A stretch of 24,059 bases of DNA. Source: Vitrella brassicaformis CCMP3155 (Eukaryota; Protista; Chromerida). This document shows positions 2,434 to 23,234 of this stretch, piece by piece. Both the position numbers and the translations under genes were made by a program. The stretch spans positions 1-24,059 of the forward strand of contig CDMY01000753.1 in assembly GCA_001179505.1 (NCBI GenBank), in the 5' to 3' direction. The notes beneath the pieces are model-generated. The model did no database searches. It saw only the letters and a program-made list of their open reading frames with translations, and was not told the origin of the DNA. The stretch's first letter is position 1. Each line of letters opens with the position of its first letter.

Positions 2434-2468
2434 CAGGCCCCCATTTGGCATGTGACCCACATACATAA
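2434..2468 (+). repeat. Outer segment of the left TIR
   Basis: CAGGCCCCCATTTGGCATGTGACCCACATACATAA matches the reverse complement of 8644-8678 (CAGGCCCCCAAATGGCAGTTGACCCACATACATAA) with about 4 mismatches. Confidence 0.85.
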
Positions 2469-2654
2469 CAAGTAAGGCGCCCAGGCAAGCTGAGCGCGGT
2501 GCACGACCCCCCAAGTGATTGGGGCGACTGTGCGTTTGACGAAGAATGCAGATGTGTCCAACAAACACGTCGATCACACCAGCCATGCGATGAGTAAAAG
2601 AACACATGTCCTTCTCCCTTTTGTAGCTGTGTGTATGTGTGTGGATGTGTCATG

Positions 2655-2756
2655 AGATAGGTACGAACACGAAGAGACATAGAATATCGCACAGGTAAGA
2701 ACAAGACGCACAGCACAATTGTGCCGAGATAGGTACAAAGACGAAGAGACAGAGAA
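2655..2756 (+). repeat. ~31-bp imperfect direct repeat inside the nested element
   Basis: gagataggtacgaacacgaagagacatagaa (~2655) versus gagataggtacaaagacgaagagacagagaa (~2726). Confidence 0.75.
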
Positions 2757-3658
2757 CACTACAAATCATGAAGGCAGGTATTGTGCAGTTGGGGTGAACT
2801 ACACGAATCATGAAGCATGCAGGGCGGATCACGAGGAGGACAGGCAAACAAGCGCAGATCAACAAACATGCGCAAATCAGCTTCTGCCAACGAAAAATGA
2901 CCGATGAGAAGAGTGTGCCTTCTTGATCTCGAGCCTATTGGCACGAGAGCCGATTGGTCCACGCTCTTGAGGAGCTTGCCCAGAGCCCTGACCACAGCAG
3001 CCCATCGTTCGCGTCCTTGTCGTTTGTGTCGATGGTGTCGCCGAACTTTGCAGACACAGACGAGAGAGGCGTCGTTGTGTGGGAGATGTGTCTGTGTGTG
3101 TGGTGTGTATGCCCGTGGTACCTCACCTGATGTCGATTCGCGCTGGCGACCCTGGCGGCTGTCGTTGTTGGGCAGTTCTGGGTGACTGTCTGCCAAGGAA
3201 CGCACTCACGTACAGGCACATGACTCTTACGGCAGGCAGTACGTTGCTTTGTCCTCTTACGGCGAGGGCATGAGTGCTTGGTAGCCGAGACCCAGTGCTC
3301 GCCGCACAGGCCGAACTTGTCGAGGCAGGCCCCGTTGCCTTCTGCATTCTGTACGGCGACGGGTTCTTGCTGGGGCATCAGTGGCGGGGGTGCATCACTG
3401 GGCACAAACACGTGCACGGGCACAAATGATTGCCTGACAGACACAGAGTCATCAGGAACAGATGAACCGGTCGGGGGGTAAGGTGTGTCCACGAGAATGA
3501 GTACCTGTGGATGTCGGCGGGCAGCGACTGTGTGTTCTCGTCGTCGGGCCACGCTGGTGAGAAGACCGGTGATGCAAGGGCGAGCGTGCGAAGACGAGGA
3601 AGGAGGAGAGAAAGAAAAGGAGCAGCCGCTGACGGCTGAAGAAGACGACTGAGTGCTG

Positions 3659-3721
3659 AGCTTGACAGACTGACTGCTGAGCTTTTAACAGACTGACTGC
3701 AGCTTTTAACAGACTGACTGC
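3659..3721 (+). repeat. Three ~21-bp subterminal tandem repeats
   Basis: (g)agctt(tta/g)acagactgactgc occurs three times near the right end of the nested element. Confidence 0.8.
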
Positions 3722-3815
3722 GAGGCGACTTTGGCAACCCCGGAAGAACCGATCGTACGCACGGAAAAAAAGTAGCCTAGAGCAGTCCCCCAGCTGGTGC
3801 TTTTGGGGGGTCGTG

Positions 3816-4080
3816 AAAATTGCAGAGAAGCAGCCCACCCGGCTGATCAAAAGCAAATGTGAACCGCCCATGTAAGAGCCTCTCACACACCAAGCAGCAG
3901 CTCCTCGCTCGGTCACGTTCTTTCACAATGGGAACCCTTCACCCTTCTAAGGGCGCCCCGTTCTCGGCAATCAAAGCAGCTGTGACCACCGGGCTGGGCG
4001 CATCTGAACGCTCACTCAAAGGGCATCCAAACATCATCACCTCACTCACTCTGGTTCGTGAGATATGATTCACTCAATTC
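3816..4080 (+). repeat. Inner segment of the left TIR (~265 bp)
   Basis: aaaattgcagagaagcagcccacccggctgatc...gagatatgattcactcaattc is the reverse complement of 8378-8645, near-identical in the outer part with small indels further in. Confidence 0.92.
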
Positions 4081-4132
4081 TGTCCGACCACTGCGTATCT
4101 GACTTGCTGCTTTCTCTGCAGTGACTTGACAG

Positions 4133-4483
4133 ACACGGACCGCCGCCAATTCCACGGCCGTCGCCCAGGTGATCTTCTCGTTCACGTCGACACACGAGTA
4201 CCCCAACGACATGGGTGCCGAGGGCGCCCCTGCTGCCGCCGCACAAGGAGCTGCTGCTGCTGCTGCGGCTGCCGCTGGTGGCGAGGAGGCAGGGGATGGC
4301 GAGGGCGACGGGGTGCAGCAGGATCACGACCTGTATGCCAACCACGATGATGACGATCCAGAGGGCCTCGAGGCCGTGCAGCAGGCGGCGCAGCTGTTTG
4401 GTGAAGCGCCCATCCAAGGATATATGGGCGCTGCGCTCGGCCATGGGGTCGACCACGCTGAGGTTGCAAATCTGATAGACTGA
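4133..4483 (+). CDS. Terminal-exon-like acidic/Ala-rich coding fragment convergent with the transposase
   Basis: The frame is open from 4130 to a stop at 4483 (...FTSTHEYPNDMGAEGAP...DHDLYANHDDDDPEGLEAVQQAAQLF...). A pyrimidine-rich tract and CAG acceptors (ending ~4121 and 4132) precede it. Confidence 0.5.
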   Translation, partial: TRTAANSTAVAQVIFSFTSTHEYPNDMGAEGAPAAAAQGAAAAAAAAAGGEEAGDGEGDGVQQDHDLYANHDDDDPEGLEAVQQAAQLFGEAPIQGYMGAALGHGVDHAEVANLID

Positions 4484-4693
4484 GAGTAGGTTGGTGTATG
4501 AGGTGGCGATGAGGAGCCTCATGGACTGATTGGTGTATCTCTGTGCATTGTACATACATTCGTATCAATCAATCGATGAATCATCGCAATTACCAGTCAA
4601 TCTGTCAATCATTGAATAGGTTACTCAATGCTGACACTTGCACCAACCACTGCTACGCCAATCATTCATTCTCTATATATTATCTACATTTCG

Positions 4694-7600
4694 CTAGATA
4701 AGAGGTGGTGTTCTACTGGGATATAGTTTGACCTGGGCTACAATTTCATTCCATTTCTCTTGCTGTTCCTCACCTATCTGTGGCAGCTCAAGCAATGGCA
4801 CCTCTGGCAATGGCCGGTCGTACTCATCGGCTGCAATCATCTGAGTGCTCACGTTGCTGGCGTAGCTCAACACAGCCCGATGCTTCTCACTCATCGAGGC
4901 CAGTATGTGTCTCTCCAGCTGCAGTTTGATTATTTGCAGTCCCAGCTCTGCCTTCACTTGTTTGCCGCCGCCCTTCATTGTGTGATTTTCTTCGATCAAA
5001 TGAGCCTCCTTGTTCACCGACTCGTGTGCTTGCATATTTAGGAGGCCGTATGGGGGCGCCATCCCATTCATCGACTCGACCAGGTGTGGAAGGACGTGGC
5101 ACTCGAGTAGATGCATCGAGGGTGTGTAGATGTCGAGCCACTTCAGCCCGAACGGCAGCAGTGAGCAACAGAAGCAGAGACATTAGTATGGGAGGAAGCG
5201 AATGAGAGAGCGCCTTACATTGTCAGGCCAACGACCTTCATCTGCCAGAGATGGCGGGAGAAAAGCCGAAGCTGATCCTCAATGGCAGGGGCAGGGGTTC
5301 TGAGGCAGAAGCGGATAACCCAGGCGTAGGACATGAAGAAGCACCAGAGTTTCCCCTTTTCCTTGGCTCCAACTTCCACGAGCAGAAGGAGGTAGTCGCG
5401 TATGTCTCTGGCCTGCAACCGGCTCTTGGGACTTTCCAAGACGCATTGATTCGGCAAGGATGGCTCGATCCTCCTGCTCAGTCTTGGACTGTGCCGCCCC
5501 TCCCTGTTCTCCCTCTTCAAAAACAATCGACGTCGAGGGCCTCCTTGACCTCGTCCTCACTGAGTGGCTTGATGCCTCCCTCAAACTCTGCCTGCTGAAA
5601 GTCTGCAATCTGCTCCTCCTCACGTGGCAGCACCTCAAAACAGGAAGGTGGAGCAGATGCCACGGTACTGCATGTCTTCATCGCACCTACCTCCGTCGGT
5701 AGCGATTGATTTGATCACTGGCATGAAGTTGAGGGGCAGTTTGAGATTGTCAGTAAGTCAAAACGTGCTTCTGTCTTTGCTGAACACACCTACTTGTTGT
5801 GTCTCATCCGCATGAGTTCGCTGCCGTCACCAGATATGCATAGTGGGATGGTGATTTCATCGTCAGCGGTCCATAGCTCGTCCTTGATCAGGTCCAGCCG
5901 CCAAACACCATCTACCACGCTGGGGTGGGTTTCGATCAGCCACTGGAGGAGCCGAAAGGGACTCACCTAGGTTGATGAGAAGTGCTCGTTGGCCTTGCGC
6001 GGATCACACGCATATCCAAGGGCACCGCCAGGACGGAGCAAATCGAAGAGGTCGACCTCTTCCAGTGAGGGCATGTAGTCATGTCTCTCCGTCTGGATGG
6101 CCTTCTTTGAGGGAAGAATGCGGGGCTTCTTCTTGCTCCGTGACCACCGTGTACGCCCGGGGAGGATGTCGTTGATCAAGAGGTTAGTGATGAGCTGCAG
6201 GCGTTGCCATCCAATGTGCAGCTTCAACTGAAGAGAACGGTACAACGACTCGCTCACACGACAGTAACGCTCCGCAAATCCTTTGACGACATCCAGCAAG
6301 GCATTCCGCAAAGAACCGACGGGCCGCGCATCTTCACCTTGCTGTCTCACTCTGTCCAGAAACAGCTGCCACACACCAGACAGGACGCCTCGAAGTATGC
6401 CGATGGGCCAGTTGAAGACGAAGAAGAGAGACAGCAGGCGAGTTAGATTGTTCTGCATCGACTGCAGCTTGCTTGAAGTACCGCCGTAGCTCCACCCCTT
6501 TGGACGAAATCTGCCGGCGAGGCCATTTATCCAGAGCAGGACCTCTACGGCGGCATCCGCCATCTTGTTGCGGCGCCGGTTCCCGGACTCGTCTCGAGAC
6601 GCTGCGTATTCGGTGATGGACTCCTCGGGACCGACAAGAGCCGATCCAACACTGGTGGTGATTCTCAGCTGACGCCATTTTTTGCCGCCTTTCTTCCCCT
6701 TCATTTTCTCTAACATCTCCACCTGCACATGAGCCGTGTGACTCTCATCTTGATCATAGTGGACCCGCCGAATGAGTGTCCAGGGTTCGTCGTTGTTGAC
6801 GTCCTTGTGCTTCGGCCCGATCTGCTTCTTGTTGGCGGACTCAGGACTCTCTGCCCCTGGACGTCCCTCTGCGTCTTGATCATCACTCATCTCCGCCTCC
6901 AGCTCCAGGGCGTCGTCATTATCTTCTCCGACGTCCTCCTCTGCGGCCATCAGAGGATCCAGCTCATCCTCTGTTTTCACCTGCACCAAGGGGCCTGCGG
7001 ATGTGGCTGCGGCTGCGGCAGCGGCTGCTGGCGGGCTCACATCCCTCGCAGGGATGTTCATGTCCTTCAGGCTGCGCGGAGTGGGGAAAGGACTGTCAGC
7101 CTCCTGATCAGACGGAAACTGATCCCAGTCATGAACATCTCCTTCTTCGGAAGATTTGATGGAAGATAGACGCTCCTCTGCATCTGACTGAAATCGGTCG
7201 TCTGTCTCCATTCCGGCAGGCCGAATTGACTCTTCTTCAATGAGGTCCTCGTCCCAGGCAGCAGCAGCAGCAGCAGCATGAGTCCGCTGTCTCTGCCGTC
7301 TCCGCTGTTTTGGAGCAGCTGCCGGTGCCGCAGCTGGTGGAGAGGCAGCCGCCGCTGCAGCTGCGGCGGTCGGAGAAACATCGCGGATCCCAGAAATGTA
7401 CTTGGAATAGGTGGCTCTGTCTTCTCTGACGCGTCTCTTGACACTGTGCGGGAGAGCCGTGAACTGGTCGTTCATCCGTCTCCAACGCGCTGAGAATCTC
7501 ATCTATGGCCACCTCTCGTGCCCGCTCTGTCTCCACCTGCTCGAGGACCTCTTGCCGTGAAGTGACCAAGCGCTCGAACAAGTCGATTGGCAGGCCTCCT

Positions 7601-8103
7601 GGCAAGGACGGGGTGAAAGTCGGGATATTGCTGATGTATTCTTGAAGATAATCCCGACACAACTTGACAAAACGATTAAACCGCGCTTCTTCCTTGCGGC
7701 AATTCTCCCATCCGCCCTCCATCAGACGCACCAGGGTACCGTCGGCCACTCTCCGTGCCTTCATCCTCTTTTTGAGGATTTCGACAATGCGGCGGGGCAG
7801 CGCTTTACCGCCGACAGTCAGTGCATCATCGTCGGCCTCCCACTCCGCTCGACGCTTCCGTTGGTTCAGCCCCGCGGCGGGAGACGCGGGTGCGGGTTGT
7901 AATGGTGGAGGCAATGGAGCAGGTGCGGCTGCCGCGGCAGCTGCAGCTGCCGGTACTCCTCCCCTCCCTCCGCCTGCAGCTGCCGGTCCTCCTCCCCTCC
8001 CGCCGCCACGAGCTCGTCTCCTCAGAAGAGGCCTGCCTTGGTCGTCCACGTCATCGCCCAAACGCGATATCCCCAGCTCAAAGCCACTGGGTGCGCCAGC
8101 CAT
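4694..8103 (-). pseudogene. Frameshifted RAG1/Transib-like DDE transposase with long N-terminal extension
   Basis: Collinear motifs across frames: SESLYRSLQ...ILPSKKAIQTERHDYMP (cf. RAG1 SCSQYHKMY...LLP), CISGDGS (D at ~5826), IATDGG (D at ~5695), LWCFFMSYAWVIR helix, TPSMHLLECH (H-x4-H, ~5096-5113) and QAHESVNK (E at ~5021; cf. RAG1 GNESGNK). Lesions: frameshift ~7475, in-frame TAG 5967-5969, and further stops/shifts at 5800-5400. Confidence 0.75.
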
Positions 8104-8377
8104 TGGTGGTGAGTTGGGTACCGGCTGAGATGCAGGCAGCCAAGTGGTGGTCTGCACAGTCAATGGGGAGAAAGCAGAGCGGCAGGTGGTGACCGTTTCT
8201 GTACAGACTTGCGTGACACATTTCTCGCGAACCAGAGCGAGTGCGAGGACCACCCTAAGGGAAACATGCATCAGCGGTCACTGCCCTTTGAGTGACGGTT
8301 CCAGCGGAGACGGCTACTAGCTTGACATGGGGGAAATGGGGGCAATGCATGCATGAAGTGTTTCACGCGTTTCACGC

Positions 8378-8678
8378 GAATTGAGTGAGTCATATCTCAC
8401 GAACCAGACTAAGCGAGGTGATGATGTTTGAAATGAATTGACAGTTCTTTGAGTGAGGGTTCAGATGCGCCCAGCGCGGTGGTCACAGCTGCTTTGGTTG
8501 CCGAGAACGGAGCGCTGTTAGAAGGGTGCCCATTGTGAATGAACGTGAGCGAGCGAGGAGCTGCTGCTTGGTGTGTGAGAGGCTCTTACATGGGCGGCTC
8601 ACATTTGCTTTTGATCAGCCGGGTGGGCTGCTTCTCTGCAATTTTATGTATGTGGGTCAACTGCCATTTGGGGGCCTG
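8378..8678 (-). repeat. Right TIR (~300 bp, uninterrupted)
   Basis: Reverse complement of 2434-2468 + 3816-4080. Read outward-in it begins (CA)CAGGCCCCC. Confidence 0.92.
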
Positions 8679-8984: not shown

Positions 8985-8999
8985 ATGGCAGACACCATC
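8985..8999 (+). pseudogene. First 5 codons (MADTI) of an ORF interrupted by the LTR retrotransposon; continues at 21938-22216
   Basis: Removing the element and one CATC copy rejoins ATG GCA GAC ACC ATC to CAT CCG TGC..., giving a 97-aa open frame. Confidence 0.4.
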
Positions 9000-10800
9000 T
9001 GTGGTGAGGTGCTCCCTCCCCACTGACTCATTGATTCTTCTTTCGAAGTACTTTTCGTTGCCCGCCACAGGTGCTCTAAGCCCTGTGCAAGGCGCCCTCC
9101 CAAGCAAATGCTTCGGAGACGGCTGAATTCTTTTCTTGTCTACATAACTGTAGCCTACATATCTGCAGCTCTGCCCTTCGTGCCCCGTCGCCCTCGAATT
9201 CGTTTCATGTATGCACTGCATGTTGTCTGCTGGGGGGCTGGCTGTCTGACTGGCTGACTGGGGAAATGGATGGAAATCGATGGGAAGGAAGGACTCGTTT
9301 TTCCGATGTACAGGCAGTGCCGCCCATCTGTGGGTTTACTTTGTCGATTGGTACTGGTTTGCGCCCGCGAGCGCTCGTCGAGTGACGAAATGACTGTCTG
9401 AAGAAGCGTCTGAGACACGCCTTGTTTGCTTTGATTGGAGTCTGTACGAGAGAGGAGAGGTGCTCTGCTTATTTCTGTGAGGGCCTATGTATTTACTTCA
9501 TGAAAGAAAGGCCGAGCAAGGGGAGACAGGAGTGCACAGGCTAGGAAAGAAGGCTGGCCGTGGCTGAGTTGTGTCGAGAGATGTGTAAATGCATGCGGGT
9601 CTGCATGCATACTCGCTGGTTTTACAAGGTGTACGCTAGTTCTACAGGGTGCGTACATAACGCCGTACGCACTGTAGGGCAAGGACATTTTTCGAATGCT
9701 CCAACTCTCCTTCATCACCCCCATTCCACTTCCAGTCCACCCGTGTGACTTCTGTCTTTGGTGCTTCTTCGTGCGGACAAAGCGACTTCGTTTGGTTTGA
9801 GTGAAAGAGACGTGTCGTTGTTGTCTGTCTTGCATCTGCGGAGGTGTTCCTCGAGCAGTCTTATTCCCTCGTGGCCTTTCTCGGCGTCTCGGAGCGGTCT
9901 TGGGCATCAGGAGCGGCTGCAAGGAGCTCAGGTATGACATTGACTGGCTGCGCTTGTGTGTGTGTGTTGGTCTGTGTCAGTGCTGAATGCGCCTGAGGTA
10001 ATCGGATGCCATCGGAGCGGGAGGCGGACCTCACGGATCCGGGACGTGCTCGCCTGAGTCGCGGTTGAATACGGGTTACTCAGGGTAAATGGCATGTACT
10101 GCCTGATGGGACGCCGCCTGTGGCTTCGTAAGAGCGAGTTGTACGCCCGTGAGGAGCCGAGACGCCTCGCTGACGGCGATCTGCTGAACGGGCTGCAAGA
10201 GAACACTCCGTTGAGGATGTTCTTGTGAGCTTCCGTATGCGATGAAGCAGAGTGGCAACAAAGGAGACATGGTGCGGCCATGCTCGCTTTGTGTGTCTTG
10301 GACGGCCGAACGAAAGCAATGAGAGAGTGACTCATTGACTTGTCGTTCTGTGCCTGGTCGACGGTGTGTTGACGAGATGGAGAGAAGACAGTGATTTTCC
10401 CTCTCGACGGACGGAATGTCTCTGTATGTTACGTATGGCTTCATGGCATCCCACCAGCCCTTCGTGTCTCTCTTGTTAGCTGAGACTCAGACCTCCCTTG
10501 TGAAGGTGTGGTGAATGGTTGCGTATAGGATGCGATGCGATTGGTCATCCTCATATTCGTTATTGAGCTGCGCTGGATGGAGACATGCGTCGAATGCAAT
10601 GTCCCTCATCGTGTGTCGGCTGGATTGGTTTGTATTTGATGATCGATCAATCCCTCTCGCCCACACGACCCTTTACATACGCTCGTGAACCATTCGTGCG
10701 ACGATGGGTCCTCGTTTGTTAATTACCGGCATGCATTCACTACACACGGTGGATGTCTTGTGTGTACGTCGCTCACACATCACTATCCCACCTCATGACA
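9000..10800 (+). repeat. 5' LTR (1801 bp)
   Basis: Starts TGTGGTGAGG and ends CCTCATGACA (8/10 imperfect terminal inverted repeat). Directly repeated at 19798-21933. Confidence 0.97.
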
Positions 10801-11036: not shown

Positions 11037-12864
11037 ATGCTACAAGCCCCAGGGGCTGGTGTGTTTGTCAATCCCAACGGACAACACGTTCAGTGGTGTG
11101 TCGGGGCAAATCGTTGGCGTGACATTCAGACAGGGCACATAGCAGTTGCTCCTGCGAATCACGCTGTTCCGATTCAACAAGCACCGCAGGCACCTGCTGC
11201 ACCAGCAGCTCCTCCTGCGCCTGCTCCTGTAGCACCGGCAGCCCAGCCAGTTCAACTTGATCCACTTCTTGCTGTCGCTGGCCCTGACGCTCATCTCGTC
11301 TTTGTAGACGGAGTTGACGCCATGGCTTTCTCTGAGCGCAACAACAAGATCAACTTCATTTGCAACAGCATTGGCACTTACAATGGCACTGTCGAGGGCC
11401 AGCCGGCCGAGCAGTTTGTCGATCGATTCACGCGAACGATCGGTGATGTCGGCCAGTTTTTCGGCCAAAGACAAACTTCTCACGTTGGGCCAGTGCCTGA
11501 GTGGCGAAGCGAAGGGCATCCTCGAGGGATACCACAAGAGGCATCCCATCTCTGATGCCGCGGCGAATGATCCCAACGATGCCTACTGGCAGACAGCGTT
11601 GGACGAAGTCATTGCCGACGTCAAGGCGACGTACGGCATCACTCCGGGCTTTGCCCGCCAAGCCGTCAAGATTCTGAGCAACCCGGCGTCGATCAATCAG
11701 ATCAAACCGGACGGTTCGTTGCGTCAGAGATTCACTGAGTTGGAGAAGATCATCAATGTGGCCGAGACGCAGGTCAAGCTCACCGATGAGCAGAAGGCCG
11801 ATGCGGCCATCTCGTTGCTGCCTCCCATATTGCAACCCAATCTGAAGGTTCAGATGGAGAACAACTGGGAGCAGCGCAAAGCGGTCTATCTCACCGGCGC
11901 AGCTGGTCGAGCCGAGACCGATGAGGAGTGCCCCAAACGCAAAGACTGCTACAACTTCCAACAGGCAAAGAGACACGCACTCATGTATGAGAATGCGTAT
12001 CCTGAGCCGGTTGCGCAGACCAACTTGAGTTACAAACACGAGGCCACTCGCTCACCTGATGTGGCGAAACTCATGGGTGCGTTTGGTGAGCTGCTCAAAC
12101 CATCGACGGACAGCATGGACAGTTTGTCGGCTGTGGGTGCCTTCGCCGCCCCCAAGCCGGCTGTCCCATTCGCTAGTCTCGCTGAGGCCGTCCAGTCCAC
12201 GATGAGTCCGTTCGCTGTGTCTTCTGGCTCCAAAGCCACGAAGGAAGAGAAACCAGCGAGCAACTTGGGCATGTCTCAGGGAGACTTAGCCAAACTCATC
12301 AAGGACTCGGTCGGCGAGAAGGTTGAGGAGGCGTTGGCGAAACAGAAGAAGGATGCTTCTTCGTCTCGCCCGTCCACCTTCTCCCGATATCGTTTCGGCG
12401 GCACCAATCGAGTGAGTGCGCTCGAGGAGGATGCTGCGTCCTCTGACGGCGACGACGAGGGAGACATCGTCTTCAAGTCGATGTTCTCGGCACTCATCGA
12501 GCAGAAGAGTATGCCCCCTGCCCAGGCTGCGAAGCTGGCACGGGCTGCTCAGGAAGCTGCCATCAAGTCGAGAGTTCCTTCCCACATGCGCACTGACGCA
12601 AGCACGAGTTCCGCGCCGTCCAGTTCGAGCACCTCGAACTCGGGAGGCGGCGGCAGAATTCAGTGCTATGAGTGCAAGGGCTTCGGGCACATCGCTGCTC
12701 AGTGTCCCAATAGGAAGAATGCTCAGTCATTCGCACAGCCATCGTGTCCTGCATGCGGCAAGCAGCACGCATTCGTCGATTGCGATTCTGAGGCTGCTCG
12801 CATACTCAGACGCGCGCATTCGGACACGGCGGCTGCCACCGACACTGCACGGTCGGGAAAGTGA
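11037..12864 (+). CDS. gag: Gag (~608 aa reconstructed), with one +1 frameshift at the T5 run 11457-11461
   Basis: Pro/Ala-rich N-terminus; capsid-like TYNG...EQFVDRF joins SAKDKLLTLGQCLSGEAK if one T is removed. Zinc knuckle CYECKGFGHIAAQC (CX2CX4HX4C) plus a second CPACGKQHAFVDC. Confidence 0.88.
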
Positions 12865-12905: not shown

Positions 12906-14188
12906 GAGATCGTTTCTGCCATGCATGAGGTCGATGACGTCGATGTCTCGAATGTACAGCTGACGAGACATGACAATGTACAGTCGAATGGTGATGTACA
13001 GTCAAGTAGTGACAGACCTACATACCAGCAAGTCTTGAGGTCCAAGAAGTTTCGACTTGGAGGGATTTCGGTGGATTCTCTGCCGAAATCGAGACGGATC
13101 ATCACGCCGACAGGCAAAGTCCTGCAAGTGATGAAGCAGTACCCGATGATGCGTTTTTCGAATTGATATTCGAATGACGGTCGTCTTATTACCGTATCCA
13201 CAATCATTCCATCGCTGTCAACAAGAGAGAGTGGCGTTGGAATCCGCACGGTTGGTATCGATGCCCGGAGCTCGAATACAAGTATTGCGATCGGAGGATG
13301 GAGCCTCCTCGCTCGACACGCGAGCAGAGGGGCTACGCCTCTGACGCGGATGGTGGAAGATGGGACTCGTCTGATTCAGGCAGTTCATCGGCTGGCGATG
13401 ATTGTCAATCAGAGAGGGAGCTGCCCAATATCGTGCCGCGACGTTTGACGAGGAGGAAGCGTCAGCGCCTCCGGGACAAACGCGCAAAGCACGCGCGCAG
13501 GCATCTCTATTATCCTGACCAATCGTACGAGCAGATCTTTGCGAATTTTGCCGTGTTGCCCACCATACACGCGCATCTTCGGAGCACATCGCTCGAAAGA
13601 CATGCGTATGAGTTCAAGCAGGTCCACGCGCCTCTTTGGATGTATACGTATGTCCCTCCCCAGTCGACCCCTGCTATCCGGCCAACCCCGAAGCAGCGGG
13701 CTATTCCTCGTGAGATAGAGAAGGCTCGTACGCCTCCATCTTCTCGTGAGACTACAAAGAGGAGGAAGAGACAGCGGGAAGCAAAGAAGGCGAGTCAGTC
13801 ATCCAAGTTCACGGCTGTAGATGAGTCTCACCAGCCGCCCTCCTCTTCTGGCTCGAAGCAAGATGTCTCGATGACCTCACCGGTGATCGATGTGTCTTCC
13901 TTCGTTCCTGACGTCAAGAAGTCTATTCGGTATTGGTTGTTGTCGCTCTTGGCTCTCTTCTGGTTGGTACTCGTCGCGAGCGCCGCCAAAGGGTCAATGC
14001 CTGAGAGAAAGACAATCATCAAGAGCCCACTCCGATGGACAAAGACCCTTGCTGAGCTCAAGAGCTGGTTCACAGGGGCCATCGTTCAAAGGAGAAACAT
14101 CTCATGCTGTACGATAGCCTCAATGAGGGGCGCATCTTGGATGAGATGCTTCGTTCAGGCTATCGTGAGTGGGAGACCGTTTCACTGA
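12861..14188 (+). pseudogene. Pol N-terminal extension (disrupted ORFs 12861-13166 and 13178-14188)
   Basis: Consecutive sense frames between gag and pol contain basic runs (RRLTRRKRQRLRDKRAKH; KRRKRQREAKK) and a hydrophobic segment (IRYWLLSLLALFWLVLVASAA). The frame breaks near 13164-13177 and 14056-14100. Confidence 0.55.
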
Positions 14189-17100
14189 AAGCGTTCTGTC
14201 AGCATGTGTTGACATTTCTGTCTTGGCTGCTCTTGGCCGCCGTTGCATTCATGCACGGCGTGTCTGGCAGCAACACAATCGTTTCTTCCATATTTTCTCT
14301 CTTCACTGGCTTAGCTTCGCTGCTTGCCCAGCGACCTAAGCAATTCATACGTACAGACAAATTGGAAGGCTGTCGACTGCATGCATATCGTGCTGCATGC
14401 GGCCTGACTTCGTTCTTCTCGTTTGTCCCACTTACTTGGGTGGCCCTCATTGTAGCTTTCTGTAGCGCTTTGATGTCTTGTCACGCATTGGCGGGGCTGG
14501 AAGGTGGCCGTTCAGCCGTACTTGCCTGCATGGATCAGCAAGGGAATAAGACGTTCCTGTCGAGTGTCGAAGGAACGGGCTTTCGTCTCACCACTTCTGT
14601 CTGGCTTGGTTCACGCAAGAGGGGCGATTCTGTCTCCGCCTTGGTGGATACAGGTGCAGATAATAGTTATATGTCATTTTCCCTGTATCGCACTCTGCGT
14701 CAATTTGGGATTGTTGACGATCTGCAGCCGACATGGAGAAGGCCTTACAGTGAAGGAGGTCTTCCCTTGAAGGCCAAAGGCAAAGTGCGATTAACGCTTG
14801 CTCACCCAGAGTCAATGGCTGGAGTGACACCGATTTATTTCGATGTGACAGTGGTAGAGAACATGACCACGGACTTGATCCTTGGTGGTGATTTTCTTCA
14901 CTATCACTGTCGAAATATAGACATACAGAATATGAAGCTGTATTTGTCTCGCTGGTCGCCGATGTGTCTCTTCCATGCTCGGGCTGTGTCTCCCGACATG
15001 CGAGGGTCAGCGGCCAGCCGTCTGACAAAGGACCTCTCGAGGAGAGGCCTGGACAGACACTCACCTGCGACTTCGATTGTCTCTTCGATTGAGGGACAGA
15101 AATCGAAGAAAGCTCAAAGAAAACCCAAGGTTCGTCTGCAAGGCGGAATGCCGGTGGCTCGCGCGTCAGCCAGTCACTCCATTCCTGCCTGGACGATGGC
15201 GGTTGTTGAAGCTGAGCTGCCCGACTCAGATTTGTCTGAGGGGACAGAAGGCCTCATCGAACCGCTGAGGTGCTGTCCTTTTCAACAACGGCTTTGTGTT
15301 GCAAATGCACTGGTGACAGTGCGAACCGCTCACCTGACCGTCAAGAACACAGACAGAAAGAGAAAAGCTACGGTGGTGTACGTGCCAGTAGCTAATTTCT
15401 CTCCCAGACCTGTCAAAATTCAGATCGGTACTGAGATTGGCAAATTCGTGCCAATGCAGCTGATCAAACACGAGAACGTGATGCCTGTCATGGATAAGGC
15501 CACGTATCGTGTACGAGACAAATCTTTGCTGGAAGGCTTGGATTTGCCGTCATTTGCCACTGTCGAAGAGGATTCCTCACTTGGCAAAGACGAGAAGGGC
15601 CGAGACATTGCTGAGGTCTTGTATACAAACTGTCCGTTCGTCAAGCCTGAGACAGATGAGATAGCTGCTGTCGCTACTCACCTCTCGAAGGCCGATGCGG
15701 TGGAAACTCATGTGATCGATCCCGATTGCTGTGTTTCCGCTGTGGCTTCGTTTCCATCCAAAGGAGACGTGGATGAGGATGAGTTGCCCGACGCCCAGCG
15801 CGTCGTCTCGCCCGATCATCCACTTGCTCCCGATCCATCTGACGATGATCCCATCATCGAAGATGAAACGGAAGAGCAGAATGAGCCAGTGCAAGGCTCC
15901 CACGACGACCCAGTAATTCAGGAAAATCCTGATTTGAGTCGATCGAGGGACGGCACTTGGTTGCATTCATCGCCTGACCCGAAAGAGACAGATGAGCCAC
16001 CAGTGCAAGAATTTGCGCGAAGGGAAGACTCACCGAATTTCTCTCGAGTCGGCGCCAGGCAATACGTGAAAGAGGACTTGTCGCATGTCGACAAGATCAA
16101 CTTCCTTGTGTATCCTGAGGATAAACATGGGCAAACTCAAACACAGAAAGCTATCATTCATAGCTTGGCTTGTGAGTTTGAGGATTGCTTCTCGAGCGAA
16201 AAGATTCCGTATGGCAAAGGCAAGCTGGTCTACCATTATATTGAGGTGAAGGGCCAGCCTCCTTATGAGCCTGCACGAAATCGACGCTCACCAGCGAAAG
16301 CAGCAGAAGAGCAGAGGCAAGTGGATGACATGTTGAAGGAGGGAATGATCCGCCCTTCGTCATCACCTTACTGTGCCCCTGTTGTTCTTGTGCGGAAGAA
16401 GGATCCGAATCAATGGCGTCTCGTCGTTGATTACCGACCCTTGAATGCGCAAACTGTCTTGGATAACTTTGTGCTTCCTCGCATTGATGAGACCTTGGAT
16501 GCCCTCGCGGGACATTCATGGTTTGCGACGCTCGACTTGGCAAAAGGTTTCCATCAGATTCCGATGGCTGAGTGTGACAAACACAAGACAGCCTTTGCAG
16601 TTGCTGGTCGAGGACAGTTTGAGTATGAGTTCCTACCCATGGGCCTCTCAAACTCCGTCGCTACCTGTCAACGATTCATGGAGGTTTGCTTGGCTGGTCT
16701 GCAGTGGCAAACATGTCTCGTCTACCTCGATGATATCTGCGTCATGGCAAGAAGCCATGAAGAGCTCTGCACACGCTTGCGTGAAGTCTTTGAGCGTGTC
16801 CGAGCTGCGAATATTCGATTCAAGCCCTCAAAGTGTGTTCTCGGCACGAGGCGAATTGATTACCTTGGTCATTCTGTCACGGCCAAGGGCGTCAAGCCGC
16901 TCAAGGAGAAAATACAAGCTGTCGCTGACTTTCAGTTGCCCAGCAACAAGAAAGAGCTCCACAGCTTCGTCGGCTTGTGTCAATATTATCGCCGATTTGT
17001 GCAGGATTTTGCAGTGATTGCTGCTCCTTTGACGGACAAGCTCAGTGCAAAAGCACCTGACAAATTCGCGTGGACATCAGAGATGAGGGAGGCATTCTAT

Positions 17101-19788
17101 CGTCTCAAGAAGGAGCTCTGCAGTGAGCCCATCCTTCGCCTACCCGATTTCTCTAAGACATTCATCTTGAAGACAGACGCCAGTGACCGTGGAGTCGGTG
17201 GCGTGCTGGTTCAAGAGGATGCGGATGGAACAGAGCATCCTGTCCTTTATGTCTCTCGCAAGTTTAACGCCACGGAGGAGAAGTCCTGGTGGCCAACAGA
17301 GAAAGAGGCATTCGCTCTGTACTGGTGTGTGAAGACTCTTCGTCCTTACCTGGACGGGAGGCACTTCATCATCAAGACCGATCACTCTGCTTTGAAGTAC
17401 ATCAAAGCATGGAGAGAGATCAACCAGAAGGTCCAGAATTGGAGCCTGCTCCTCCAAGACATGGACTTTGAGGTGCGGCACAAGAAAGGCAAGCTGCATC
17501 GAGATGCTGACGCCATCTCGCGGCTCTGCGCCATGGCTGCCAAAGCTTGTGGTTGCACAGAGGAAGAGTGGCGCTCGATGGTCAACACCATCGAGGAGGA
17601 CTTCGACGAAATGCCTGAAGAGGGCAGTCCGCTCTCAGCAGACATTCTGAGAAGTGAAGCGTCCGCTCATTGGCCAAGTGATGAAGAGATCATCACTTTG
17701 CAACGAAACGATGAAGAGCTGGGTCAAACATGTGAGTATCTGACCACGGGCAAGGAACCAAGCGACGAGAAAATCGCAAGGATGGTCCGCTCGGGCTCTT
17801 ACGAGTTTTCGTTGATCGATAGAAAATTATTCCGAATTTTCCGAGCACCCAGCAGAGGGATAACGCCGTGTCTCGTTGTTCCTCCGCCTCTTCGCGAGAA
17901 GGTGCTCTACGAGAATCACGGCCATGTGTTGGCTGGCCATCTCGGTCTCCAGAGAACTGTGTCTCGCATTTCTCTGCGATACTGGTGGAGAGGCATGTAT
18001 GACGACATTAAGAGATGGGTCATGAATTGTCCAGTGTGTCGTGCGGCGCGACAGCGCCCGACGACTCACTGGCCTCTCAAACCCATCCCGGTGACTCGTG
18101 CGTTTGAGTTGGTCGGCATGGATATTGTTGGACCGCTGCCTGAGTCACACAATGGCAATCGTTACATGCTTGTCTTCATGGATTACCTGACAAAATGGCC
18201 TGAGGTATTTCCGATGAAGGACATGACGGCTCTCGCTGTCGCTGAGTGCTTGGCTTGGTTTGTTGCCCAGCATTCAGTGCCGAAAGCCATTTTGATTGAC
18301 CAGGGCTCGCAGTTGAAGTCGAAGGAGCTTCAGAAAATCTGCGATGTCTATGGCATACACCACAAATATACAACACCAGCACATCCAGAGACGGATGGCT
18401 TGGTGGAGCGATTCAACCAAACCCTTGTCCACCAACTCAAGAAGCTGGTAGACATGAAGGAGAATCGCTGGGAGAAATATCTTCCGTATGTGTTGTTTGC
18501 TTACCGTGTCACCACGCAGCAGAGCACGAACCATACGCGGTTTGAGATGGTGATGGGTCGACAAGCTCGTCTGCCGGGTGATCAGTCTTTGGTTGCAATG
18601 GACATGCTGTCCGGCATTGAACCAGAAGACTATGTCGAGGTGCTGCGCGAAGGCCTCGAGATCCTGCACAAGGAGGCTCGGGAGAACATCGCAAAGCAGC
18701 AAGAGAAGATGGCCCAAAAGTCAGCTTGGGCCGCAGAGAAGCTGCCCCGATATGAGATCGGGCAGATGGTTCGTCTCCATTTGAAGCAGATTCCGAAAGG
18801 AACCAGCTCGAAATTCGCTCTCCCTTGGCGAGCGATTTTCCGAGTCGTCGACGGCTTCAACAATGGATTGAACTACCGCATTCAGCCTCTTGGTGGACAA
18901 CAGGTGATGAATGTGCATGTCTCTCGCTTGGCACCCGCTTATAAAAGCAAATGGCTCCAGGAATCCCCTGAGAAGCCAGAGAGCTTTAAGCAGGTGACCA
19001 TCGAACACAGGCCCACCGCACCAGCGAACGTCTTGGACGAGACGGACACCGGTGAGGTGTGGGAAGTGCAAGAGATACTCGATATGCGCACCAGGAGAGA
19101 CGGGCGCCGCGACTATCTCGTCAAGTGGAATCTCCTGCCGCGTAGCTTGGCGGAGTGGATTCCAGAAGAACAGCTCTTCTGTCCGAAGCTCTGCAGTGAC
19201 TTCGAACGGAGAAAGAGAATGATCGATGCGAAGAAGCAATCAGAGCGGTACGTGAAAGCTCAAGCTGTAGCTGCAAGTCGCGCCAAAGTTGGCGGCCTTG
19301 ACTTCACTGAGACGCCCAGATTGCAGCAAGAGCCTGCAAAAGGAAAGCAACCGACCTTTGAGCAGATCAAAGTGGGCCAGGTTCTCCTTTTGTTTCATCC
19401 TGAGTCGCATGGCATTTACTACGTGAATGTGTTGGCAAAGGATGGAGACGGCATTGAAGCTCGCTATCTGCCGAAGAGCTCGAAGGTAGAGGTCGAGCAG
19501 GGCAAGTTCAGACACCCTGCTGGATACTCCACTCGCTTCTCGCGCAGAGAGCTTGAGAAACACTACACTTGGCGGATCATGGGAGACGCCGAAGTGCGAG
19601 CCCTTCCCAAAAGGAAGGCACTGAAGATTCCTGCTCCTCCTCAGGCAGCGCAAGCGCCCCCTGCATCACAGCATGCCGGGGCCGCACAACAAAGAGCGGC
19701 GTCGACGGAGCGTAGAACCTCGCAGAGACTCGCTGACAGGCGGGCTGCGCAGAGTTCATCGTCGACCGAGGACGCTCGACGTCAATGA
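14104..19788 (+). CDS. pol: Pol polyprotein: PR-RT-RNase H-integrase-chromodomain (1894 aa open)
   Basis: LVDTGA (14641-14658); RT motifs SPYCAPVVLV, VDYRPLN, LDLAKGFHQI, PMGLSNS, YLDD (16723); RNase H TDASD, EKEA, TDH; integrase HGHVLAGH...CPVC, MDIVG, DQG, DGLVERFN. Confidence 0.97.
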   Translation: MLYDSLNEGRILDEMLRSGYREWETVSLKAFCQHVLTFLSWLLLAAVAFMHGVSGSNTIVSSIFSLFTGLASLLAQRPKQFIRTDKLEGCRLHAYRAACGLTSFFSFVPLTWVALIVAFCSALMSCHALAGLEGGRSAVLACMDQQGNKTFLSSVEGTGFRLTTSVWLGSRKRGDSVSALVDTGADNSYMSFSLYRTLRQFGIVDDLQPTWRRPYSEGGLPLKAKGKVRLTLAHPESMAGVTPIYFDVTVVENMTTDLILGGDFLHYHCRNIDIQNMKLYLSRWSPMCLFHARAVSPDMRGSAASRLTKDLSRRGLDRHSPATSIVSSIEGQKSKKAQRKPKVRLQGGMPVARASASHSIPAWTMAVVEAELPDSDLSEGTEGLIEPLRCCPFQQRLCVANALVTVRTAHLTVKNTDRKRKATVVYVPVANFSPRPVKIQIGTEIGKFVPMQLIKHENVMPVMDKATYRVRDKSLLEGLDLPSFATVEEDSSLGKDEKGRDIAEVLYTNCPFVKPETDEIAAVATHLSKADAVETHVIDPDCCVSAVASFPSKGDVDEDELPDAQRVVSPDHPLAPDPSDDDPIIEDETEEQNEPVQGSHDDPVIQENPDLSRSRDGTWLHSSPDPKETDEPPVQEFARREDSPNFSRVGARQYVKEDLSHVDKINFLVYPEDKHGQTQTQKAIIHSLACEFEDCFSSEKIPYGKGKLVYHYIEVKGQPPYEPARNRRSPAKAAEEQRQVDDMLKEGMIRPSSSPYCAPVVLVRKKDPNQWRLVVDYRPLNAQTVLDNFVLPRIDETLDALAGHSWFATLDLAKGFHQIPMAECDKHKTAFAVAGRGQFEYEFLPMGLSNSVATCQRFMEVCLAGLQWQTCLVYLDDICVMARSHEELCTRLREVFERVRAANIRFKPSKCVLGTRRIDYLGHSVTAKGVKPLKEKIQAVADFQLPSNKKELHSFVGLCQYYRRFVQDFAVIAAPLTDKLSAKAPDKFAWTSEMREAFYRLKKELCSEPILRLPDFSKTFILKTDASDRGVGGVLVQEDADGTEHPVLYVSRKFNATEEKSWWPTEKEAFALYWCVKTLRPYLDGRHFIIKTDHSALKYIKAWREINQKVQNWSLLLQDMDFEVRHKKGKLHRDADAISRLCAMAAKACGCTEEEWRSMVNTIEEDFDEMPEEGSPLSADILRSEASAHWPSDEEIITLQRNDEELGQTCEYLTTGKEPSDEKIARMVRSGSYEFSLIDRKLFRIFRAPSRGITPCLVVPPPLREKVLYENHGHVLAGHLGLQRTVSRISLRYWWRGMYDDIKRWVMNCPVCRAARQRPTTHWPLKPIPVTRAFELVGMDIVGPLPESHNGNRYMLVFMDYLTKWPEVFPMKDMTALAVAECLAWFVAQHSVPKAILIDQGSQLKSKELQKICDVYGIHHKYTTPAHPETDGLVERFNQTLVHQLKKLVDMKENRWEKYLPYVLFAYRVTTQQSTNHTRFEMVMGRQARLPGDQSLVAMDMLSGIEPEDYVEVLREGLEILHKEARENIAKQQEKMAQKSAWAAEKLPRYEIGQMVRLHLKQIPKGTSSKFALPWRAIFRVVDGFNNGLNYRIQPLGGQQVMNVHVSRLAPAYKSKWLQESPEKPESFKQVTIEHRPTAPANVLDETDTGEVWEVQEILDMRTRRDGRRDYLVKWNLLPRSLAEWIPEEQLFCPKLCSDFERRKRMIDAKKQSERYVKAQAVAASRAKVGGLDFTETPRLQQEPAKGKQPTFEQIKVGQVLLLFHPESHGIYYVNVLAKDGDGIEARYLPKSSKVEVEQGKFRHPAGYSTRFSRRELEKHYTWRIMGDAEVRALPKRKALKIPAPPQAAQAPPASQHAGAAQQRAASTERRTSQRLADRRAAQSSSSTEDARRQ
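14590..14960 (+). other. Retroviral-type aspartic protease domain
   Basis: ALVDTGADNSYMS and DLILGGDFL motifs. Confidence 0.92.
16340..16885 (+). other. Reverse transcriptase domain
   Basis: Ty3/Gypsy RT motifs with catalytic YLDD. Confidence 0.97.
17155..17520 (+). other. RNase H domain
   Basis: FILKTDAS...EKEAFAL...IKTDHSAL...ADAISR. Confidence 0.95.
17900..18920 (+). other. Integrase (HHCC zinc finger, DDE core, degenerate GPY/F module)
   Basis: H-x4-H...CPVC; GMDIVG / IDQGS / LVERFN; KFALPWRAIFRV...NYRI at the GPY/F position. Confidence 0.95.
19051..19206 (+). other. Chromodomain
   Basis: EVWEVQEILDMR...YLVKW...EWIPEEQL..KLCSDF matches the chromodomain pattern. Confidence 0.9.
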
Positions 19789-19797
19789 GGGGCGAGC
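19787..19797 (+). promoter_or_regulatory. Polypurine tract
   Basis: GAGGGGCGAGC abuts the 3' LTR and overlaps the pol stop codon. Confidence 0.75.
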
Positions 19798-21933
19798 TGT
19801 GGTGAGGTGCTCCCTCCCCACTGACTCATTGATTCTTTTTTCGAAGTACTTTTCGTTTCCCGCCACAGGTGCTCTAAGCCCTGTGCAAGGCGCCCTCCGA
19901 AGCAAATGCTTCGGAGACGGCTGAATTCTTTTCTTGTCTACATAACTGTAGCCTACATATCTGCAGCTCTGCCCTTCGTGCCCCGTCGCCGTCGAATTCG
20001 TTTCATGTATGCACTGCATGTTGTCTGCTGGGGGGCTGGCTGTCTGACTGGCTGACTGGGGAAATGGATGGAAATCGATGGGAAGGAAGGACTCGTTTTT
20101 CCGATGTACAGGCAGTGCCGCCCATCTGTGGGTTTACTTTGTCGATTGGTACTGGTTTGCGCCCGCGAGCGCTCGTCGAGTGACGAAATGACTGTCTGAA
20201 GAAGCGTCTGAGACACGCCTTGTTTGCTTTGATTGGAGTCTGTACGAGAGAGGAGAGGTGCTCTGCTTATTTCTGTGAGGGCCTATGTATTTACTTCATG
20301 AAAGAAAGGCCGAGCAAGGGGAGACAGGAGTGCACAGGCTCGAGAAAGAAGGCTGGCCGTGGCTGAGTTGTGTCGAGAGATGTGTAAATGCATGCGGGTC
20401 TGCATGCATACTCGCTGGTTTTACAAGGTGTACGCTAGTTGTACAGGGTGCGTACATAACGCCGTACGCACTGTAGAGCAAGGACATTTTTCGAATGCTC
20501 CGACTCTCCTTCATCACCCCCATTCCACTTCCAGTCCACTCGTGTGACTTCTGTCTTTGGTGCTTCTTCGTGCGGACAAAGCGACTTCGTTTGGTTTGAG
20601 TGAAAGAGACGTGTCGTTGTTGTCTGTCTTGCATCTGCGGAGGTGTTCCTCGAGCAGTCTTATTCCCTCGTGGCCTTTCTCGGCGTCTCGGAGCGGTCTT
20701 GGGCGTCAGGAGCGGCTGCAAAGAGCTCAGGTATGACATTGACTGGCTGCGCTTGTGTGTGTGTGCTGGTCTGTGTCAGTGCTGAATGCGCCTGAGGTAA
20801 TCGGATGCCATCGGAGCGGGAGGCGGACCTCACGGATCCGGGACGTGCTCGCCTGAGTCGCGGTTCCTCAGGGTAAATGGCATGTACTGCCTGATGGGAC
20901 GCCGCCTGTGGCTTCGTAAGAGCGAGTTGTACGCCCGTGAGGAGCCGAGACGCCTCGCTGACGGCGATCTGCTGAACGGGCTGCAAGAGAACACTCCGTT
21001 GAGGATGTTCTTGTGAGCTTCCGTATGCGATGAAGCAGAGTGGCAACAAAGGNNNNNNNNNNNNNNNNNNNNNNNNNNNNNNNNNNNNNNNNNNNNNNNN
21101 NNNNNNNNNNNNNNNNNNNNNNNNNNNNNNNNNNNNNNNNNNNNNNNNNNNNNNNNNNNNNNNNNNNNNNNNNNNNNNNNNNNNNNNNNNNNNNNNNNNN
21201 NNNNNNNNNNNNNNNNNNNNNNNNNNNNNNNNNNNNNNNNNNNNNNNNNNNNNNNNNNNNNNNNNNNNNNNNNNNNNNNNNNNNNNNNNNNNNNNNNNNN
21301 NNNNNNNNNNNNNNNNNNNNNNNNNNNNNNNNNNNNNNNNNNNNNNNNNNNNTCTTGTGAGCTTCCGTATGCGATGAAGCAGAGTGGCAACAAAGGAGAC
21401 ATGGTGCGGCCATGCTCGCTTTGTGTGTCTTGGACGGCCGAACGAAAGCAATGAGAGAGTGACTCATTGACTTGTCGTTCTGTGCCTGGTCGACGGTGTG
21501 TTGACGAGATAGAGAGAAGACAGTGATTTTTCCCTCTCGACGGACGGAATGTCTCTGTATGGTACGTATGGCTTCATGGCATCCCACCAGCCCTTCGTGT
21601 CTCTCTTGTAAGCTGAGACTCAGACCTCCCTTGTGAAGGTGTGGTGAATGGTTGCGTATATGATGTGATGCGATTGGTCATCCTCATATTCGTTATTGAG
21701 CTGCGCTGGATGGAGACATGCATCGAATGCAAGGTCCCTCATCGTGTGTCGGCTGGATCGGTTTGTACTTGATGATCGATCAATCCCTCTCGCCCACACG
21801 ACCCTTTACATACGCTCGTGAACCATTCGTGCGACGATGGGTCCTCGTTTGTTAATTACCGGCATGCATTCACTACACACGGTGGATGTCTTGTGTGTAC
21901 GTCACTCACACATCACTATCCCACCTCATGACA
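19798..21933 (+). repeat. 3' LTR (about 1792 bp once the spurious gap and duplication are removed)
   Basis: Same termini as the 5' LTR. About 26 differences by manual comparison, including an 11-bp deletion near 20865. Confidence 0.97.
21053..21352. other. Assembly gap (300 N) with overlapping flanks
   Basis: 21009-21052 is identical to 21353-21396, while the 5' LTR has this 44-bp segment only once. Confidence 0.95.
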
Positions 21934-23234
21934 CATCCATCCGTGCCTCAGTCCTCACTCTCGACAGCCTCTGCTGCGGCCGGAGGCAGGAGGAGCAGAG
22001 GACGCCGCTGCTGCAGCATCACGAACGGAGATGCCCACCATAACTTCAGCCCTACACGCACGAGAGCTAGCAGCCACCACACGCTTCAGTACTCGCCTTT
22101 GCCTCCTGCCTCACGTGCCATGGTCTGCTCTCTTCCCGTGGAGATCTGCCTGCCTTCCTATTACCGTGGATGAGGGAAGATGGGTGGAATTGGCGCCCGT
22201 CCGATGCAGAGGATGAGGTGAAGGCCGACAGACTAAAGATCCAAGGAGGGGATGGATGTTGCCCTGCCCGACACGCCGCTTGCTGCTGGATGCGTAGGGA
22301 TATTCACAGGTTCAAATCACCTGAGTCTTTGTCCATTCACGCCATGCCGACACAGCATCGCAAGGGAAAAAGGTCTCTTTTCGGCTCGTCTACCGATTAC
22401 AAAAGTGTTATGTTTTCGGGACTTCCGCGGTTATGTGTCCCTTTTCCGTGGCTCGACCAGTGAATACACGCCCCGCGAAAACGAAAAAAAGCCCGTCCTA
22501 GCCTGGAGACACGAGTAGCGAAAGAAACCGACGGGAGACATGCAGACAGACCGACAGACACCCACCAAGGAAAATGAGTTTGGCATCCTGTGCAAATGCC
22601 ATTACCAACCGTCACCATCGTCACAGGTGAGGGAGGAGGTGTAGTAGAGAGGCAGAAGACCCAGGAAAAGCCACCCTGGTGGGTGATCAAGAGGGAGGGA
22701 AGAGGGAGAGACAAGCACCCACACGGGGCACTGCCAGCAGGAAGTGGCCACGGCCGCCAAAACAACAAGGAATGGGCCTCGGCAGACAGTATAGAGGGTG
22801 GACTAACACAAGGAAGGCCCTCGAGGGCTTTTGATCCACGAGACGCCTTGGCCCCCATTGCATGCATGCGTGGCCCCACGGGGAGTTCGAGACTTTCTCG
22901 CGTCAAACCACTGCAAAAGCTCGCAGCAGCAGCGGTCGTCTGTTGCTCCTTCCTGTGACCTCTCAGCTCGTGCTGGGAGGAGGAGGGTGTGTGTAGTTGT
23001 TGGTCCGTAAGCAGCTCATCAACTGCGAGACCTTCAGTGGCGAGTGAGCATCGTCATGTCAGGCGAGGCGAAGGAGGGGGAAGTGGTGCATCCCCCTGGA
23101 GGAGAGGGCACATAAGAGCAACCTCCAAAGCAGCAGAACACGGTGGGATGCACATACATGCTCACTTGCACATGCCTTTGTGCACCACGGGCTTTCCCAG
23201 AGAGAGAGAAGAGCCATGCATGGCAGCATGCGTG

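Follow-up and report, generated by a model that had tools for sequence, protein, structure and literature searches.

A conserved orphan module with a predicted SH3-like barrel fold follows the chromodomain in a Vitrella brassicaformis Ty3/gypsy-type integrase

A 24,059-nucleotide stretch of the genome of the chromerid alga Vitrella brassicaformis CCMP3155 (assembly GCA_001179505.1, contig CDMY01000753.1, positions 1 to 24,059 of the forward strand; the window hereafter) contains a Ty3/gypsy-type long terminal repeat (LTR) retrotransposon whose integrase continues past its chromodomain into a second module of about 73 residues. From its pattern of conservation this module is a discrete unit under selection; it is predicted to fold as an SH3-like small beta-barrel, and its sequence is that of an orphan family, found only in two diverged retrotransposon families of Vitrella. 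Single chromodomains on LTR elements are well known, and in some chromoviruses the chromodomain tethers integration to marked chromatin. For the tail as a whole, the explanation that we favour on balance is a conserved orphan barrel placed after the chromodomain and likely serving as a second tethering module. An earlier sequence-only reading of the window had proposed something more specific, namely two tandem reader domains, a chromodomain followed by a Tudor or chromo-barrel module of the Royal family, and we indicate below how far the evidence carries that proposal.

A second conserved module lies downstream of the chromodomain

The pol open reading frame (ORF) of the element runs uninterrupted for 1894 codons on the + strand (14104–19788) and encodes protease, reverse transcriptase (RT), RNase H, integrase, chromodomain, the extra barrel and a basic tail. 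The peptides on which the sequence-only reading was built are found inside this ORF, in frame 1 of the + strand at 19051–19570. That stretch is real and ends slightly too early, as the second module, delimited by conservation, by the AlphaFold2 model and by fold matches, spans pol residues 1754–1826 (19363–19581, + strand) and may reach to about 19600. To find relatives, we scanned 1.84 billion representative proteins exhaustively with phmmer, using pol residues 1743–1849 as query. Apart from the gene model of the window itself, the single real match is a Vitrella protein, CEL91738.1 (230 residues, E = 2.9e-10, 39% identity), in which chromodomain, linker and module occur in the identical order. 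A third gene model, CEM11018.1, falls in the 90% cluster of CEL91738.1, and its contig carries a nearly full-length related pol, with frame breaks, that is 48–52% identical to the pol of the window. The order chromodomain, linker, module is therefore common to two diverged retrotransposon families of one genome.

Comparison of the two families shows that conservation along the integrase tail is strongly uneven. Identity amounts to 66% in the integrase C-terminal region, 17% in the spacer and 62% in the chromodomain, falls to 25% in the linker (with indels), rises again to 45% in the module and drops to 3% in the tail, so that the conservation among copies on which the sequence-only reading depended is indeed present in the module and stands out from the linker and tail around it. 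Within the module, identity between the families at codon positions 1, 2 and 3 is 0.59, 0.62 and 0.38, with the third position near saturation, and 16 of the 32 identical residues are encoded by differing codons; it is therefore the protein, and not the nucleotide sequence, that has been conserved. The two copies of the second family differ within the module by two synonymous and no nonsynonymous changes, and the ratio of nonsynonymous to synonymous changes between these copies is 1/4 in the two domains vs. 10/3 in non-domain sequence (Fisher p = 0.047). Taken at the level of sequence, these patterns indicate that the second module is under protein-level purifying selection and that it is a discrete conserved unit, more so than chance would produce. 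It contains, as its most conspicuous conserved feature, an invariant nine-residue loop, LPKSSKVEV, followed by a short helix and a strand (FSR.ELE..Y.W), and it is rich in aromatic residues, with 9–10 F/Y/W per 73 residues. The positions that are aromatic in both families are pol 1764 (F/Y), 1772 (Y), 1773 (Y/W), 1788 (Y/F), 1802, 1812, 1821 and 1823.

The module is predicted to form an SH3-like small beta-barrel

We modelled the module with AlphaFold2 from a three-sequence alignment. The best model has a mean predicted local distance difference test (pLDDT) score of 85.5 and a predicted template modelling (pTM) score of 0.75, and all five models lie between 82.7 and 85.5 in pLDDT. The predicted structure has a short helical turn and strands at model residues 16–21, 26–36, 39–44, 51–54, 57–59 and 65–69, and the barrel strands are followed by a helix (70–76), a strand (78–81) and a short helix. 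The same secondary structure recurs, at a pLDDT of about 80–88, in a model of the whole tail from chromodomain to module. A Foldseek search of the module model against the PDB returned nothing at E ≤ 0.001; its list of weak matches comprises Sm/LSm proteins, several Tudor domains, KapB, ZapC and a designed SH3 barrel. Fold matches also include the RimP-type barrel (1ib8, 3fb9), Spindlin, Papi, TDRD2 and PHF1, as well as the barrels of LSm/Hfq, TraI, ZapC, EF-P and MscS. The top structural neighbours are all SH3-like barrels, many of them of Tudor type, although in these structural searches the Tudor domains do not rank above the Sm-like and other barrels. For a prediction, the assignment of the module to the SH3-like small beta-barrels, the fold class that includes Tudor and chromo-barrel domains, is well supported, and to this extent the fold proposed in the sequence-only reading holds.

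Among the shape matches in the ESM Atlas are Sds3-like proteins and one rve-containing protein, and a feature search of the same resource with the window's module was uninformative. In BFVD, the only proteins of similar fold were uncharacterised ones from phages, at E of at least 6e-3. A comparison of language-model features, limited to named clusters, ranked those of PTM/DIR17 Tudor, Spindlin and Tudor-knot/MBT first, at 0.76–0.77; as this score is meaningful from 0.9, we regard the ranking as no more than a lead towards the Tudor clan. Two specific origins for the barrel were also considered. That it could be a duplicate of the integrase C-terminal domain (GPY/F, SH3-like) was rejected, since an hhalign comparison of the module profile with a three-sequence alignment of the integrase C-terminal region gave a probability of 0.4% over 10 aligned columns. 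A chromo-shadow-like domain is unlikely as well: chromo-shadow domains have the three-strand-plus-helix chromo fold, whereas the model places five to six strands in a barrel, and the module has no chromo or chromo-shadow match in Pfam.

An HP1-like chromodomain joined to the barrel by a linker

Judging by its sequence relatives, the region at pol residues 1650–1705 (19051–19218, + strand) is a true chromodomain of HP1-like type. Residues 1653–1703 score 34.1 bits with Pfam Chromo (PF00385; cut-off 25.1; E = 2.6e-8), 47 chromodomain sequences in the PDB match at E ≤ 0.01, and the closest solved relatives are HP1/CBX and CDY proteins, headed by CBX5 (3fdt, E = 2.2e-7). The pLDDT over this domain in the tail model is 73–89. 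The cage of HP1-alpha, which we take to consist in CBX5 of the Y of GEEY, the W of KWKGF and the F of KGF, aligns to W, W and L in the window, as had been read from the letters at the outset, and the three-aromatic cage is thus incomplete. Leucine occupies the third cage position in both Vitrella families, and the motif KWNLLP is identical in the second.

The linker (pol residues 1706–1753; 19219–19362, + strand) is predicted to begin as an extension of the C-terminal helix of the chromodomain, and to continue as a disordered, indel-rich stretch in which pLDDT falls below 50 (tail-model residues 89–107). The whole-tail model has a pTM of 0.42. The tandem readers of the sequence-only reading are accordingly better described as two separate folded modules, since a linker of such low confidence does not indicate a fixed tandem unit; in the model, chromodomain and barrel would behave as beads on a string rather than as one packed body. 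The module is followed by a basic, low-complexity C-terminal tail of low pLDDT (residues 1827–1894; 19582–19785, + strand), which is not conserved.

The module is confined to Vitrella in the searches performed

Among the representative proteins scanned with phmmer, none from outside Vitrella carries the module. The remaining hits P0003–P0006 are giant bacterial repeat proteins for which sub-threshold matches to Ig-like repeats had been summed, and we discarded them as spurious. The closest non-Vitrella pol (P0009, 33% identity) terminates directly after its chromodomain, and the nearest proteins reach just 33–41% identity over the integrase. Two JGI metagenome scans, one with chromodomain patterns and one with the module pattern PKSSKVEV, found zero relatives, and a word-indexed protein search with pol region 1640–1850 among proteins of 1042–3314 residues found nothing. 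When the tail alignment was used in the word-indexed search, only a Vitrella fragment and an MMETSP transcript were recovered, and the latter covers the integrase C-terminal region and not the module. The architecture that the sequence-only reading proposed to look for elsewhere thus recurs in the second Vitrella family and, in the scanned set, nowhere outside Vitrella. By these sequence searches, the barrel is an orphan family present only in two diverged Vitrella retrotransposon families.

The protein derived from this MMETSP transcript, P0008, aligns with the second family over the integrase C-terminal region and, shortly ahead of the chromodomain, passes into unrelated sequence; truncation of the copy, splicing or a chimeric assembly could each account for it. 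P0008 shows that the second Vitrella family is transcribed.

The host retrotransposon and other features of the window

The element is bounded by direct repeats of 1.8 kb at 9000–10800 (5' LTR) and 19798–21933 (3' LTR), which are ~98% identical by blastn and lie on the + strand. Both open with TG and close with CA, and a 4-bp target-site duplication, CATC, is read in the flanks outside them (8996–8999 and 21934–21937). The 3' LTR contains an assembly gap of 300 N at 21053–21352, which accounts for the drop in GC content in the 21–22 kb bin. Between the LTRs, a gag-like ORF with a CCHC zinc knuckle (11314–12864, + strand) gives a weak zf-CCHC match of 19.5 bits against a cut-off of 20.8. The domains of pol follow the order protease, RT, RNase H, integrase: an aspartyl protease with a weak Pfam match (residues 174–266), RT (763–924; RVT_1, E = 7e-32) and RNase H (990–1119; RT_RNaseH, E = 7e-35), which together occupy 16390–17460 of the + strand, and the zinc-binding H2C2 domain (1259–1316; Integrase_H2C2, E = 4e-20) and catalytic core (1332–1428; rve, E = 1e-12) of the integrase at 17878–18387, + strand. 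Downstream, the integrase C-terminal region mentioned above (1547–1620; 18742–18963, + strand) has a weak Integrase_p58_C match and is presumably the GPY/F-type SH3-like domain usual in integrases. A purine-rich tract, GAGGGGCGAG, at 19787–19796 of the + strand overlaps the pol stop just upstream of the 3' LTR and is, from its sequence and position, a probable polypurine tract. With LTRs ending in TG..CA, a target-site duplication and this order of domains in pol, the element is of Ty3/gypsy type, and the ~98% identity of the LTRs, the CATC duplication and the open pol together make it a young and apparently autonomous insertion.

In contigs from public sequencing runs, the internal region of the element is found as one identical 9086-bp contig with zero variants, and identical fragments are also contained in a marine-sediment metagenome. 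Two short segments, 18469–18512 in the integrase region and 19761–19800 at the pol end and LTR edge, are present on other public-run contigs at 2–3 times the depth of the element body; these deeper contigs may come from related repeats or from solo LTRs at other genomic sites.

The N-terminus of pol ahead of the protease (14104–14600, residues 1–165) has several long hydrophobic, transmembrane-like segments and is kept in the second Vitrella family at ~30% identity. An ORF at 13298–14188 runs, in the -1 frame, into the beginning of pol, an arrangement that suggests a frameshift junction. Outside the element, two large minus-strand ORFs (5967–7502 and 7237–8271, within 2434–8678) have no Pfam match, and short repeats of AAGCA/AAGTA type occur at 415–671 among G-rich and C-rich 20-mers (family D1).

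Proposed role of the barrel and alternatives

The Vitrella element resembles other chromodomain Ty3/gypsy elements in the order of its pol domains and in the HP1-like chromodomain at the C-terminus of its integrase, and by analogy it may share their presumed tethering to marked chromatin. It differs from them in that pol continues past the chromodomain with a conserved barrel and a basic tail, and in the leucine at the third cage position. A 2025 survey of transposons in the brown alga Ectocarpus describes Gypsy lineages with a C-terminal chromodomain and one with a C-terminal Tudor domain, which it presents as the first transposable element known to carry a Tudor domain; it argues that Gypsy integrases acquired chromatin readers repeatedly and independently (PMC12477816). 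The Vitrella integrase has in common with that of this element, Gypsy-10_Ec32, that a barrel of Royal-family or SH3-like type has been added at its C-terminus. By its description, however, the Tudor domain of Gypsy-10_Ec32 is itself the C-terminal reader, whereas the Vitrella barrel is carried besides a chromodomain and is not matched by any Tudor model; the hosts also differ, one being a stramenopile and the other an alveolate. Our literature search found no paper joining Vitrella, retrotransposon and chromodomain, and none that describes a chromodomain plus a second barrel for LTR elements.

Because other C-terminal add-ons of retroelement integrases offer an analogy, the most likely role for the barrel would be that of a second tethering module, which helps to select the integration site or to stabilise it. 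Here the chromodomain would attach to methylated histone H3 tails and the barrel, held by the flexible linker, would contact another chromatin feature nearby, so that two weak contacts might combine into stronger and more selective binding. The leading candidate for this second feature would be a methylated histone tail, bound in a Tudor-like mode, with nucleic acid or a host protein as alternatives; as the actual ligand, a modified histone tail can be put forward only tentatively. In the most far-reaching form of the proposal, the integrase would be a bivalent chromatin reader whose HP1-like chromodomain and very divergent Tudor-like barrel each recognise a different histone mark, or a modified histone plus DNA, and thereby direct integration to one chromatin state. 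We consider this form doubtful, and use the term Royal-family dual reader for a hypothesis.

The likeness to Tudor-type readers deserves a closer look. The module shares its richness in aromatics with Sds3 (7sxi), Krimper eTud2 (7cfd), RDM15 (7de9) and the tandem Tudor of BAHCC1 (8ye8), as against only 8–16% identity to them in structural alignments and no match to any Tudor hidden Markov model or profile. Canonical Tudor domains have a cage aromatic in the loop between their third and fourth strands. In the module, by contrast, this loop reads PKSSK and lacks that aromatic.

A number of observations weigh against a second reader of histone marks, or reduce the confidence with which any function can be assigned to the barrel. 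Its model was built on three sequences of which two are nearly identical, the conservation statistics between copies comprise 18 substitutions in total, and both the assembly and the contigs of public runs suggest that the element has a single copy or few copies. With E allowed up to 10, no Pfam family matched any of the three members searched, and among PDB sequences the module profile picked up no Tudor domain, its only matches being chance ones at E of at least 0.49. Membership of the Royal family, the part of the sequence-only reading that goes beyond the fold, is therefore neither shown nor excluded. A methyl-lysine cage in the module is putative, pol 1764, 1772, 1773 and 1788 being shared aromatic positions that might form it. 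Finally, the PKSSK of the invariant loop brings basic and hydroxyl groups and no aromatic, a composition that would suit contacts with phosphate or nucleic acid no less well than the binding of methyl-lysine.

The last point leads directly to a different kind of tether, in which the barrel would be a nucleic-acid-binding module that acts on target DNA, viral cDNA ends or RNA much as Sm-like domains or the C-terminal domains of integrases do, stabilising the intasome and reading no mark. Sm/LSm/Hfq, RimP C-terminal and TraI SH3-like domains score equal to Tudor domains in the fold comparisons, and the rve-containing protein among the ESM Atlas shape matches is consistent with such a role. The top Tudor-like match is the capped Tudor domain of Sds3, which is a nucleic-acid binder, and in both families the module, with its basic and hydroxyl-rich LPKSSKVEV loop, is followed by a basic disordered tail. 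On the other hand, the net charge of the module is just about +4 here and about -1 in the second family, and the hhalign comparison separates it from the integrase's own C-terminal region. The module also has no Sm-family match in Pfam at E up to 10, so that its likeness to Sm/LSm/Hfq and RimP C-terminal barrels is one of fold only, and the contexts differ, Sm/LSm/Hfq proteins being ring-forming RNA chaperones and the Vitrella module an integrase tail. We regard nucleic-acid binding without mark reading as unlikely, though worth serious attention.

The beads-on-a-string layout created by the flexible linker would also suit a protein–protein adaptor that docks the integrase on a host factor, as in the pairs of Ty1 integrase with AC40 and HIV integrase with LEDGF, or that mediates multimerisation of the integrase. 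SH3-like barrels commonly bind peptides, and a distribution limited to Vitrella fits a host-specific partner. Against this, no partner or motif supports an adaptor, and the structural neighbours of the module are mostly readers and RNA binders and not the SH3 domains that bind proline peptides, which makes an adaptor improbable in our estimation. Least credible, and in our judgement very unlikely indeed, is that there is no functional second domain at all and that a lineage-specific tail, similar between the families through shared descent only, was given an over-confident barrel by AlphaFold: the alignment is shallow (three sequences, two effective families), the element is low-copy and no known family is matched, but over equal time the linker and tail have diverged far more than the module, in which third codon positions are near saturation, and five models of uniformly high pLDDT agree, with matching secondary structure in two independent runs.

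Implications for integrase targeting in Vitrella

We therefore return to the favoured reading, a conserved barrel that likely provides a second tether beside the chromodomain. The C-terminal add-ons of integrases set the landing sites of retroelements and in this way shape genome architecture, and they serve as models and tools for targeted integration; a chromodomain and a conserved barrel on a leash would constitute a two-contact targeting device. If the barrel is an ordinary nucleic-acid-binding SH3 domain, the Vitrella integrase would be a modest extension of the integrase modularity that is already known. If the bivalent reader is true, no earlier retroelement integrase would have combined two different Royal-family readers, and the barrel would be the founder of a new Tudor-like family. 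As an orphan fold family confined to Vitrella retrotransposons, the barrel is tractable for binding assays, and it offers an entry into the chromatin and mobile elements, both barely studied, of a free-living relative of the apicomplexan parasites.

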